The notes beneath the pieces are model-generated. The model was not told the origin of the DNA. It was given only the letters and a program-made list of their open reading frames with translations, and made no database searches. Positions 34,447 to 40,555 of a stretch of DNA of 64,000 nucleotides are shown here, in pieces. How positions within the stretch are numbered: the stretch's first letter is position 1; each line of letters starts with the position of its first letter. The translations under genes were made by a program, and so were the position numbers. The DNA comes from Trichosphaerium sp. ATCC 40318 (taxonomy: Eukaryota; Protista; Tubulinea), in the NCBI GenBank assembly GCA_038496445.1, contig JALMLS010000231.1, forward strand, positions 1 through 64,000. The letters run 5' to 3'.

Positions 34447-35085
34447 GTGTTGCTTTCTGTGTCGCCCAGTTTTGTTCTAACATTTTCAGAAAGGGGGAAA
34501 AAAAAAATTCACGTGATTGGAGAAATAAGGAGGTTTTGAAAAGTCCAGAACCATTTTATTCAATCTTTTTTGAACAGAAGTTATTACGACACGTCATTAG
34601 CGCTATTATGACTTTTTTTTGATGAAGCGCGCGAAGCGAACTATTCGGAGGCTTCCGGTTTACCGTGTATTTAAGTGCCACTTGCGTCAAGACGTTTTTA
34701 AGCTTGAATGGCTTTTAGGCTTCAGCGGGGTATTTTTTTCTTCGTGTTTCCTCTACCCGAGACATTCAGTGCATGTCTTGCTCATTGTATTGTGTGTACT
34801 AACGCCTAAAGGATAAAAAAGGATTACGCTCTCTATAAACCTAAAATACTTCAATAGCGATATATGGAGACAACACGTAAACGTCAATCGGTGACTAAAC
34901 ATCAAAGTACAAAAAACTCCCAATTTTATTTTAGACAATGAAATCAATATCTTCAGTGTCTTCATGAGATGTATTTTCCTAAACACAATTTTAAACAATC
35001 CAATCTTAAATTGGCTAAACTAAAGCACACGTGATTCACTATTTTTTTGAAACGGCAACACGTCCAGGATTGATAAAAACAAAAG

Positions 35086-38000
35086 TTAACGCACGTTTAT
35101 ACTTGTTGTTTCTAACGGAACTATCGCTTCTTCCCTTGTGTTGTCGTCATCTTTGCTTTCTTCAAAATCACTACCGTGGTTACCTTCTGATCCTAGCTCT
35201 ACATCGTTCGATTCACCACCAGCTATGATCGTTGTGAGATATAAAGTGAGACAGCGAGATAAACATACATAAAATCTCTGACTTTAGTTTGAAAGACGCG
35301 AGATCACTTTGATACGGCACTTGACCGTTTCCTTGGTCTTGAGGGTTTATGTGTGCTTTAGGAGCCTTCAATAGAGGATCAAGAAGAGAGTTTTCTAACT
35401 CTACTCCACCATCCTCAGGTGAAGGAGGCGGTCTTGTAGGCAAGTCAACCTGAACAAAAGGTTAATACAAGTTTGGAGAAAAAAGCGCTTTTGAGCTTGT
35501 CATTGTGAATAGAGCGTACCAATGTTCCGTAAGTTTGAATAGAGCTGTAAAGGTAGAACATATATATTACAAAAGCAACTGTGAGTACAAGTGTAGTAGT
35601 AACAATAGCACCATAAGGAAACTACAAGAAGTGAGTACTTTTGATCGGTGAAACTGTTTTTTTGTTTTTGCTCGAGATGCTCTAAAGCGTACGCTGTAAG
35701 ATGCGAATACACCAATCGACATGAGTTGGTATAGTATGAGGCCAGCATTTACACTTATGAAAATAGATGTAAAGAAATTACCACCACCTGGACAATGGTA
35801 AAATTTCAGCACGTGTTTTTTTTTTGAAGTACCTTCGTAAGGATTTCTGTCTGCCCAGATTATATTGTACTTGTGAGAGACGAACGTAAGGCAAAAGTAT
35901 AACAACGCAAATGGTAAAATGAATGGTGCAAGGGTAGCATAAATTTGGACAATGAGTAGAATTAGTGTGGTGCTCGCATAGCTAAAGGTAAAGCAGTCAA
36001 AAGCTAGAAGAAAAAAACACTCGAAAAGTTTTCAAACAACAATACGTACAAGACAGCATATTCGAAAGGTTGCGATTGCCATACTATCCTCTTGGCTCTT
36101 TTGGTCTTTGCTAAGAACTTTTCCATTACTAGAGCAATAACAAGAGGTACAGGACGCCATAATTGCATCATTGTTCCTGATAGACCAGTTGTTATAATAT
36201 AGTTGATGAAGAAAGAAGCTTGTTTTGGTAAGGATGCTGCAAGGAGGCCTACGATTGATTGAGGTTCTTCTAGAACATCATTCAGCACTATCATTATTGC
36301 TCCTGCTATCGTTGATACCAGGAGGACATTGAACACAAGGAAGCAAAGGTACTTGACTGAAGTTGATCTGAAAAGAGAGTTACGTTTTCAACCGTCTTCA
36401 TTGGAAGTGAGGTTACCTCTCAAGTTCACTTTGAGTTGGGGGTTGCTGTAGAGATGACAAGAATCTCAAAACAGGAACGAGTATTGCCATGAATATAATC
36501 AAAAGGATAACAGGTATGTAACCTTGTAAAAACGTAAACAAGTTGAAAGATAAAAAGATTGTATTTTTCTGAGGTTGACTTAACCAAAGCAAAAAAAAGC
36601 CTTCCAAGCTAATTTCAGCAGGTACCTGTAATAAAACCTTGTATAGCAGGGTTGAGAGCTTTGTCTAAAAATTTCCTACAGTGTATTATTAGATTTGAGG
36701 GTTGCAATATAAGATAAAGGGAAGACGTGCAATCCAGGTAATTTAGCAAGATTTTGTATGGTTGCAACACCTTGAATTGCAACAATAGGTATTGTATAGA
36801 AGAATATAATAGCAAATACAATAGCTAGTACAGCTAGTGTACGGAAGAATTTACTCTTGCTAGAGGCAACAAGATTTTCCCAAATGATATCTCTATTGGC
36901 GTAAAGAAAGTTAGTAACAATCAAGAGATGTACATAGAATCAGATAATTACCTCAATTCAGGTGCTTTTCCTACTAACCATGTTTTATTTATCTTTGTTT
37001 GCGCCATTTTAGATGCTTCAGATATTGTCTGTATGAGGAAAAAGAGTGAACATCAATAAAGACACGTGGGCATAAAAAAAAGTTTGCGTTTTCATTTTTT
37101 TTACCTCAAAAGTCACAAATGCAGTGCCTGTTGGACTGGAATGGTTATCTATATCTTTTAGTATATCTTTCAATGCTTCATCTTTCTTCTTTAGCTGTGA
37201 AGTAAAGTAATCTAACAAAGTCTGGTGAGCAACCAAAACATAAACTTGTTACTATATTTTTTGTTATTTGTTGTACCAATAGAATCTATTGCATCTCCAA
37301 GAACCAGTTTAGGTTTATGAGTTGGTCGTTCACCTTTGTCAGTCCATTCAGCCAAGGCCTATACGTATACTTAGTTTAAAGCGACTTAGCAGTGAAAACT
37401 AGATTACCGTTTCTAACTTGTTTACAAGTTCTTCACGTTCATGGTGAAGTTTTTTAACTTTAGGGATTATTTGAACTCTGTGTACTTCCTTGACTTGATT
37501 ATTAAAAGCAGGATTAAGATAAGCCTTGATTTTAGCGTCGTTGAACTCTTCCACATCACCATCTAGTAATTACATTAAACACGTGAAGCCCAAAATAACT
37601 TGTTTACCTTCAAGCAAGTTTGGAATATGTGAAAGTTCACTTGTTTTCTAACAGCAAAGTAAGAAGTTTTGTTGATGTTTTATTATGCGTACCTTCGCCA
37701 CAGCTTTAATTCCAGCATTTGTATACTTTGTCACAGCTCCGATACCAGGTATTATACCAGTCAATGCTTCTAAGGCATCAATAGGTATCTCTGTAATCAT
37801 AGCTGAGTAATTTTCTGCAAAGTTTGGGTTTCCAATGTACTCTAAGCGTTTAACGAGATACTGTTTGACGTGAGTTTGAATAATTGAAAGGCTGTATGCT
37901 ATTACGTACTTGATCGTAGAAGCGCTTCATTAAATACATAGTAGCAACAGTATTAAAAACAACACCTACCATCTACACGAGTAACAAAGGTAAACAAAAC

Positions 38001-40270
38001 GATTTAACAAAAACTGACCGTACATGACACCAGAGATAACTTGATCCACGAGAAATATTAGCCATTGATAAAATTTCAATACCAGTAACATATTTTACAC
38101 TATCTTTAGGCAAACTCTTGTTTGTCCCAGCAACAACTAAGAAGAAAGAGAAGATCAGACCCAAGTTTAAGTAATGAAAGAAAAAAAGGAATGTTGGTTC
38201 GTTTCTTGATATCGTACTGTTGATAATGAGTATCACACATATACCGTATATACCATATATAGATACTAGGAGTAGGCAATACTTGAGGAATTTTAAGTAA
38301 ACCCAAGCGTCTAAGCCATGAGAGTGAAAGATTTCGTCTTCGCTGTACATAATAATTCTTTTTAATAGTTTAAATGGATTGCCTGGTGGTGGTTGTGGTG
38401 CTGTTCCTCCCCTAGAAATGCGTCATCATTCGTTAAAATAGTATGCTTAATGAACCAATATCTATAATGTCAAAAAAGTACACGTACCTCCATGGATCCT
38501 CCTCAAAAGGCATGCAATTTGATTCATAGAATTTCTTGAACCTTCCAATTCTTCTACATACAAGAAATCCAACGAAAAAGACAAGGGCTATTAATACATT
38601 GATACCGAGTGTAGTAAGAACACCAGCTAGATCAGTTGTTGCTACATAAAGGATTTAATAAAGTAACAGTCAATAAGTATGAAGGAAGTTTTTCTTCAAA
38701 GAACTAAGTTAAAGACAACGTACTTTGTGTCAACTCCGGCTCAGAGTTTACTATTTGTATTCGCGAGTTACCAGCATCTACAACGACTGTATAATTACTG
38801 ACAGGGTCGTCAGCTAAACCCAAGGGACCACTGAATTCCTACAGCTGTTTGTCAATCGCTGAAAGAACTTTGTGACGTTTCAAAAAAAGTAATTTAATGA
38901 CTGATCACACGTGCAGATAATTCTTTTACGAAAAACCACGTACAGCTTTTCCTGAGCCTGCCTTTCTTCCGTATTGTGCGTAAAAATCACCTTTGGGAAG
39001 TAAGAAAATATGTATTGTTGTTGTAACGAAAAAACATACCAAATCTATCGAAAACCTTGACGGCACTGGCACCAAAATCTGTCACCCAAAAGTAATTGTT
39101 TCTTGAAGATGTTGTAACATATGTAGGGTCTTCAAACTCTTCACTTACAACAGACTGAAACGTAGCTAAAGAGAGAAATATAAGTGAGACTATGTTCAGA
39201 AGGAATAACAATCTTTTTAATACCTGCAGTACTGTTTACTTTCCATATCTTGACTAGCTTGTTTCCCCTATCTACAACGATCACTTGCCTAATAGAATAA
39301 GTCTAAATACAGAATGAGGTTACGCACTCAAAGTTTTCCATATAAGCAACACCAGTAGGGTCTCTTAGTTGGTCTTTAATTACGTTAAAAAAACTGCAAA
39401 ACCACTCAGTAGTACATACTCTTCTCGATTCCAAATGATCCAAATGTGTAAAGTACATTGAATGAAGTAGCGTTTAACGCTTGTATACGATGGTTACCAC
39501 TATCTGATACGAACAAAATACCATATTTTTTACTCACAGCAACACCCTACGCAAGAACAAAAAAATTAACAAAACAGGATCTTTTTTTCAAAAAAATCAC
39601 GTGTACTTTTGGAGATATGAACTGCCCAAGTGATGCACCCAATGAACCAACATGTGCTGTTAAATTCTCTAGGTAAACGTGTTAATACAATAAAGCACAT
39701 TCTGAGTAATTGTCGGTTTTTTCGCGTACCTCTAGCGTAAGCGATTTGAATTCTGTGGTTTTGAGTGTCAGAAACGAAAATGGTGTAGGTGACGTTATCA
39801 TATAGAGCAGCTATGCCTTGAGGAAACGCAAGGGAGCCTGTCCCATTGCCTGGTGTACCAAATTCGCGTATGTATGCGCCTGGGAGTAATTGTTAAGCGT
39901 TTTAAAGCTTTCCGAAAAAAACACGCTAAATTACGTTTACAACGTACCGTATAAATCTAGTACTTGTACTCTGTTGTTCAGAGTATCAGCTACAGCGATT
40001 CTAGAGCGTAAGACGTTACGAAAGTTTTGTGCGACACATGAAATACGTACCGGTTTGTAGTTACGTTCGTTGTACTGTCAAATACACTAAAATACGTGAC
40101 ATCATGCGGGAGGTTAAACTGTCCTTTTCCGTCCCCTCTGTTGCCAAAATGCCTGTCAAAATTATACGTCTGAGCGCCTTGAGCGTATTAGCGCATAGGG
40201 AATACCGAAAGAACATACTTATAAGTGAAATACAGAGAAAGGCACTAATCGCCAGTAATATGTATCTCAT
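35086..40270 (-). CDS. NHL-repeat beta-propeller fused to an OSCA/TMEM63/CSC1 mechanosensitive channel, multi-exon
   Basis: Signal peptide; NHL repeats (FPQGIA, VSDTQNHRIQ, VSDSGNHRIQ, FSGPLGLA, VDAGNSRIQ); in-frame intron 38642-38723 into TM0; CSC1 motifs HGLDAWVYLKFLK, LSMANI, TAFVTF, DIIWENL, LPKQASFFINYI, YNIIW. Confidence 0.85.
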
Positions 40271-40555
40271 AGTGCCGAAGTGCTTATCAGTACATTAAAG
40301 AACTCCGAATAAACCAGAATGCAATTCCCAGGTTTTTGCCTTGAAAATTCTTAATGAGTTTTTCTTTGTCCTCTCGATTTTCTTTGCAACTATTTTTTGG
40401 CTCTTGTAATATCTTTAGGGAGAAAGCAAATAGCATCAAATACGTACCTTCTCTTTTTGTTTTTTGTCCAAAGTTGATGTCACGTGACTCACTTCAAACT
40501 CGTCAAACTAGTTCATTTTTTTTTAATTTGTTTTTCGAAAAAAAACTAAGGCGAA

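Follow-up and report, generated by a model that had tools for sequence, protein, structure and literature searches.

A gene joining an NHL propeller to an OSCA-type channel

A stretch of 64,000 nucleotides from the genome of the amoeba Trichosphaerium sp. ATCC 40318 (positions 1 to 64,000 of contig JALMLS010000231.1, assembly GCA_038496445.1; hereafter the window) carries on its minus strand, from 40270 to 35086, a gene whose product begins with a hydrophobic signal sequence, continues with six NHL blades (332 aa) and, after a short linker, ends in a complete OSCA/CSC1 channel with RSN1_TM, putative PHM7_cyt and RSN1_7TM domains. In this NHL-OSCA gene the fusion of domains is real, is transcribed and has been conserved within a known channel family, and we are highly confident that signal sequence, propeller and full channel lie together in one mRNA. 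Its exon boundaries were worked out from the sequence and then verified by a script, which showed that the 29 exons join into one open frame of 1149 codons, with a coding length of 3450 nt, an ATG at 40270, a TAA stop at 35086-35088 and zero internal stops. The introns of this model comprise 27 of the GT-AG type and one of the GC-AG type, and the many introns are short; the figures published for the draft genome of Trichosphaerium sp. (70.87 Mb, 37.69% GC, mean intron 75 nt, mean exon 154 nt; PMC10521059) agree with both the gene and the assembly. A first-pass annotation of the window had proposed that a signal peptide and about six NHL repeats are spliced in frame to TM0, the first helix of the channel, through an intron at 38642-38723; sequence and script agree with it on the strand, the coordinates and this junction to the exact base. 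It had missed the introns at 37029-37104 and 36523-36625, both of which were found from arithmetic on the transcript contigs, and likewise an optional 30th exon at the 3' end (see below).

Exon 1 (40065-40270) contains the start codon, a hydrophobic signal sequence of about 25 aa and the start of NHL blade 1, with a GT donor and a frame that were checked by script. Eight codons before the start codon stands a TAA, and no other in-frame ATG lies between the two. Because RNA reaches only the last 41 nt of this exon (40065-40105), leaving its first 165 nt including the ATG uncovered, we infer the start codon and the signal sequence.

The junction and its transcripts

The junction intron is 82 nt long, in phase 1, and separates the last NHL exon from the TM0 exon. 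Exon 10 ends at 38724 with the donor A/GTACGT and exon 11 starts at 38641 after the acceptor TAG/C, so that the protein reads ..ELTQ-T-TTDLAG.. across the spliced junction. TM0 is not preceded by an in-frame ATG in its exon, and 15 nt before the acceptor there is an in-frame TAA; therefore the channel part cannot start at the TM0 exon by itself, in line with the earlier claim that it has no start of its own. Retention of the intron would lead to a TAG after eight codons.

To follow splicing in RNA we used contigs from three public runs of three studies (X1, X2 and X3) aligned to positions 35050-40350, all three of which give spliced contigs with CT..AC joints on the plus strand. The joint from 38641 to 38724 was derived from depth arithmetic and from a contig piece ending at 38641, rather than read as a listed joint. 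This piece (38487-38641 in X3) corresponds to positions 52-206 of a 1038-nt contig and ends exactly at the acceptor. The depth of the bin 38590-38766 is 4.53 in X1 and 4.43 in X3, equal to the respective contig depths of 8.44 and 8.25 multiplied by 95/177, and therefore only the 52+43 exonic bases of this bin are covered. The X3 bins up to 40182 match the exon lengths within one base (72, 128, 109/110, 102/101, 117, 116, 104 and 41 nt), and the lengths of the exons summed from 38360 to 40105 give exactly 1038, the length of the X3 contig. From this length and depth arithmetic it follows that a single X3 contig joins exon 1, all the NHL exons, TM0 and exon 12. By the same arithmetic 38642-38723 is precisely skipped in contigs of two independent runs, X1 and X3, and neither of them showed a contig retaining this intron, for which the bin arithmetic leaves no room. 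The depth of X3 is even over the NHL and channel halves (4.8-9.1). An alternative origin of the TM0 acceptor in spliced-leader trans-splicing was set aside, the contigs showing cis-splicing to the NHL exon.

The NHL propeller

Together with exon 1, exons 2-10 (38724-40000) encode the NHL propeller, which occupies residues ~30-332, and the lengths of all nine are consistent with the X3 depth bins. The Pfam scans were run exon by exon, and the joined 1149-aa model was used for the frame check, the blade count and the tree. In these scans the NHL model (PF01436) was detected in exons 3, 5, 8 and 10 with 19.5, 21.8, 13.2 and 12.6 bits respectively, one exon lying above the cut-off of 20. A blade profile built by aligning one blade from four paralogues (described below) recovered five blades in the protein itself, with a 45-residue gap that contains a weak fifth blade at the correct spacing. 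In all, six NHL repeats, each of about 45 residues, follow one another in this region, the arrangement of a predicted six-bladed beta-propeller. When run against the PDB, the same profile matched all six blades of TRIM-NHL structures, including Thin (E=2e-54) and TRIM71. It matched NHLRC2 as well, and the match to the extracellular NHL sensor of PknD was weak (E=0.002). Among its 49 PDB matches up to E=1 there was no peptidyl-alpha-hydroxyglycine amidating lyase. The ectodomain has six N-x-S/T sequons, and the cysteines are confined to the signal sequence.

The channel part

The first-pass annotation had described the channel as a full CSC1/OSCA unit, and matches to all three family domains lie in collinear exons, those to PHM7_cyt being partial. 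Exon 11 (38488-38641) encodes the linker and TM0, with positions 2-36 of the RSN1_TM profile corresponding to exon residues 7-43, and exons 12-14 (37910-38411), connected by transcript joints, encode the remaining RSN1_TM region with TM1 and TM2. The RSN1_TM match (PF13967) spans exons 11-13 and scores 56.2 bits exon-wise, downstream of the TM0 exon, and 64.6 bits in a profile search of the genome (cut-off 27). The cytosolic PHM7_cyt domain (PF14703) is assigned to exons 15-20 (36952-37860) on the basis of two partial matches in exons 17 and 19, which cover profile positions 15-61 (21.2 bits) and 98-130 (13.9 bits) and are collinear, each being below the cut-off of 27 in scans of single exons. 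Exons 21-27 (35520-36892), also connected by transcript joints, encode the RSN1_7TM pore domain (PF02714). Here matches in exons 21, 23, 24 and 25 cover profile positions 1-40, 56-89, 101-198 and 198-246 with up to 87.9 bits (cut-off 28.7); the genome profile search gives 97.3 bits, and profile positions 1-274 are covered by collinear exons. The pore-domain exons include the GC-AG intron (36676-36730, donor at 36730), which is backed by transcript contigs. About 337 residues precede TM0, in contrast to the short N-terminus that is typical, if not defining, of the OSCA/TMEM63/CSC1 family.

Four copies of the fusion in one genome

A genome profile search over the assembly (70.3 Mb in 642 contigs), in which counts of loci are lower bounds, revealed at least four OSCA loci: the present gene (C100) and three others (C63, C188 and C85). 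Each of the three paralogues has NHL-type exons directly upstream of the channel exons, on the same strand and collinear with C100 exon by exon, and their first exons are comparably hydrophobic. In C63 and C188 a phase-1 intron lies at the same junction codon as in C100. The junction intron is absent from C85 (L003 3917-4090, minus strand), where a single exon runs from the last NHL strand through the linker into TM0; either C85 has lost the intron or the common ancestor of C100, C63 and C188 gained it. The final NHL strand is separated from an 'IN' motif in TM0 by 20, 20, 20 and 18 residues in the four loci. No plain OSCA gene without NHL was found in the assembly, within the same lower bounds on locus counts.

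The channel parts of the four copies and of 44 database relatives were aligned with MAFFT and used for a FastTree phylogeny (LG+gamma), the paralogues being modelled as tblastn chains with the C100 exons as queries and the C85 model being incomplete. In this tree the four copies group as a single clade with a support of 0.968, within which C100 and C63 are sisters (1.0), C188 joins them next (0.976) and C85 is the outermost branch. The channel parts of the paralogues are 58, 48 and 42% identical to that of C100 and those of outsiders 26-35%. Since the four copies form a single clade and are 42-58% identical, as against 26-35% to outsiders, the fusion appears to have been kept through three duplications, and the simplest reading would be one fusion event followed by these duplications under continued selection.

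A fifth match, on C212 (L005 5879-7399, minus strand), is a 1.5-kb duplicate of the NHL exons only, with 93.7% DNA identity to 38662-40194. It has no channel, and the duplicated stretch breaks off within the junction intron. As a start codon is missing too and the exon-10 copy is interrupted by an in-frame TAG, it is a dead pseudogene fragment. The fragment apparently shows that the NHL module moved at the junction intron.

Relatives outside the genome

An exhaustive HMMER search with the 105-aa pore exon against 1.84 billion representative sequences returned 890 matches, the best of them with 49-57% identity. In the fused protein this exon would be expected at around residue 820-930, and none of the matches listed lay beyond 810. 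Of the ten matches with the greatest length or shift, all but P0052 contained only the three OSCA domains. In this protein WD40 repeats stand with a truncated RSN1_TM lacking TM0, and it is probably a merged gene model. In P0045 the same pore segment and tail are present twice, which also looks like a faulty gene model. The best fragment, P0001, is encoded on a contig of 1 kb without gene context.

The closest named relatives of the channel part are amoebozoans and Capsaspora. In Cavostelium, Balamuthia, Capsaspora and several others with complete N-termini, RSN1_TM starts at residue 3-19 after a methionine of its own and there is no NHL; across the known members and the nearest relatives examined, 3-35 residues with their own Met precede TM0, as was expected for ordinary members when the window was first annotated. 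That annotation had not recognized the architecture, and neither did we encounter it elsewhere, as far as protein, metagenome and literature searches reach. Metagenome scans with an exon-12 alignment and a blade-6 alignment found no NHL-channel architecture, an Atlas search gave only plain RSN1_7TM clusters, and a word search from the Balamuthia pore domain gave six matches, none with NHL, being too insensitive to show absence. The best-ranked literature on the OSCA/TMEM63/CSC1 family does not mention NHL, and the Trichosphaerium sp. genome paper mentions neither NHL nor mechanosensitive channels (PMC10521059). The architecture is hence to be taken as not found elsewhere, rather than as shown to be absent, with the lineages between this organism and its relatives of at most 35% identity being unsampled and the records of this and very near genomes lying outside the searches.

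A proposed mechanism and its alternatives

OSCA proteins have eleven helices, the extra first of which starts on the outside. The OSCA1.2 structure places it 'right beside the conduction pore', with an amino-terminus that contacts the pore helices and narrows the extracellular entrance (PMC6265326). The signal sequence of NHL-OSCA, whether cleaved or kept as an anchor, would send the N-terminus into the lumen of the endoplasmic reticulum and thereby place the propeller on the extracellular (or luminal) face. About 20 residues after the propeller the chain would cross into the membrane with TM0, the first helix of a complete OSCA/TMEM63/CSC1-type channel, presumably a membrane-tension-gated cation pore like its relatives, as judged from knowledge of the family. 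The propeller is joined to the outer end of TM0 through a conserved 18-20-residue span, and the first helix of OSCA1.2 touches the extracellular entrance, so that the propeller is probably located at the pore's outer mouth. There it would bind a partner, such as the cell coat, the substratum, a prey surface or a soluble ligand, and so bias the gating, access or placement of the channel. A putative role as a sensor of a ligand, a substrate or a tether, as the first-pass annotation proposed, may be read from the topology and from the published position of the first helix.

We regard as the best explanation, and on balance as a probable one, that one gene makes one 1149-residue membrane protein whose propeller biases the channel at the outer pore mouth. 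That the propeller truly gates or modulates the channel is a more tentative proposition, for which the chances seem to us clearly below even. Several observations weigh against the favored explanation. The start codon and the signal sequence lie outside the RNA coverage. The X1 channel contig has a depth of 37.9, as against 8.44 for the contig with TM0 and NHL, and stops precisely where exon 12 begins (38410/38411); this step may reflect 3' bias or a commoner isoform without the propeller. The protein may reside in an internal membrane, as do yeast CSC1 and the lysosomal TMEM63. Finally, the propeller could be inert for gating.

This last point amounts to an alternative in which there is one fused protein, with a propeller that serves folding, export, oligomerization, coat anchoring or protection, and with gating by tension alone. 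We consider it unlikely, if a serious contender. Gating by lipid-borne force is established for the family, as reported in eLife in 2018 (PMC6235560); the blades resemble generic interaction propellers such as those of TRIM-NHL proteins and NHLRC2, and there is no sign of an enzyme-type NHL domain, no amidating lyase being among the PDB matches. Against it stand the position of the N-terminal end of TM0 at the pore mouth and the retention, despite divergence to 42-58% identity, of the propeller in every OSCA copy and of the linker at 20, 20, 20 and 18 aa. This conserved linker length and universal retention of the propeller suggest a geometry-dependent role.

The depth step in X1, with its edge at exon 12, would also be explained if the locus made mainly separate products, namely a secreted NHL protein by retention of 38642-38723 and a propeller-less channel, for example from a methionine in exon 12 (with a ten-helix, TMEM16-like core), the fused mRNA being minor. 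In favor of such a division, an X2 contig retains another intron (39166-39223), and the NHL-only duplicate C212, broken inside the junction intron, indicates that the module is separable. On the other side, C212 is a dead fragment without a start and with an in-frame TAG, X3 is even in depth with one contig joining both halves, no contig retaining 38642-38723 was seen, and the phase-1 junction is conserved, with no junction intron at all in C85. These data make separate products improbable. A fusion that is an artefact, in the form of read-through between two neighboring genes or of a chance open frame, is practically excluded and already contradicted: contigs alone cannot prove a single molecule, and P0052 illustrates that merged gene models occur, but the same layout is found four times on four contigs, splicing is precise and in frame in the RNA of two studies, the channel part has no start of its own, and in C85 the junction lies within one exon.

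Comparison with known systems

In the order of its matches to the three family domains, with TM0 first, the channel of NHL-OSCA resembles OSCA/TMEM63/CSC1 proteins such as AtOSCA1.2, and it is 26-35% identical to amoebozoan and other relatives; the difference lies in front of TM0, where known members have 3-35 residues and the present one a signal sequence followed by a 300-aa NHL propeller. We know of no OSCA/TMEM63 member with a folded outer domain. The receptor kinase PknD of Mycobacterium tuberculosis (PDB 1RWI) offers a parallel in layout, as it too combines an outer six-bladed NHL propeller, a short linker, a membrane helix and a signaling machine. However, PknD is bacterial, its output is a Ser/Thr kinase rather than a channel, and its propeller is C-terminal to the helix. 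The closest blades in sequence are those of the TRIM-NHL proteins (Thin/TRIM32, TRIM71/LIN-41 and Brat), with matches to all six blades at E=2e-54 to 3e-14, but these proteins are cytosolic RNA- and protein-binding E3 ligases with neither a signal sequence nor a membrane part. For the idea of a channel with an attached sensor of force or ligand, a conceptual model is provided by TMC1/2 with the protocadherin-15 tip link and by NOMPC with its ankyrin spring. Their tethers are either separate proteins or cytosolic, whereas here the tether would be a folded extracellular domain in the channel polypeptide, with tethering itself hypothetical.

OSCA/TMEM63 channels are regarded as sensing force that reaches them through the lipid bilayer. 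In NHL-OSCA a 300-residue propeller, kept in all four copies, would stand some eight to ten residues from a helix whose outer end touches the pore entrance. Such a gene offers a natural pair of constructs, with and without the propeller, for asking whether this class of channels can be modulated or gated from outside the membrane, and it could reveal what the amoeba senses, be it the substratum, its own coat or prey. It is conceivable, though rather improbable on present evidence, that NHL-OSCA proteins constitute a lineage-specific OSCA/TMEM63 class in which a propeller at the pore mouth makes a lipid-force-gated channel tunable or gated from outside, by a ligand or by a pull from coat, substratum or prey. 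TMC and OSCA both belong to the TMEM16-like fold group, and gating from outside, if true, would make NHL-OSCA a natural single-polypeptide 'tethered' member of this group.

Further features of the gene model

Some further observations concern splicing. The intron 39289-39327 is only 39 nt long and is backed by transcript contigs. The X2 contig noted above (39038-39253) reads through the 58-nt intron 39166-39223, whose retention would introduce an in-frame stop, and points to pre-mRNA or DNA in X2. As for the depth step in X1, an isoform lacking both the propeller and TM0 and starting at the methionine in exon 12 would have a topologically viable ten-helix core.

At the 3' end, exons 28-29 (35086-35449) encode an acidic cytosolic C-terminal tail and the TAA stop, as supported by transcript contigs and by the script; the X1 contig, which extends to 35080, is unspliced at 35094 and uses the TAA at 35086. 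The optional exon 30 (34931-34978), whose frame was checked, provides an alternative C-terminal end of 15 acidic residues. In X3 and X2 contigs a donor GTGCGT at 35094 is joined, across a 116-nt intron, to this exon starting at 34978, so that the 15-residue acidic tail takes the place of the last two residues. The loose ends of these contigs at 35094 map to 34948-34977.

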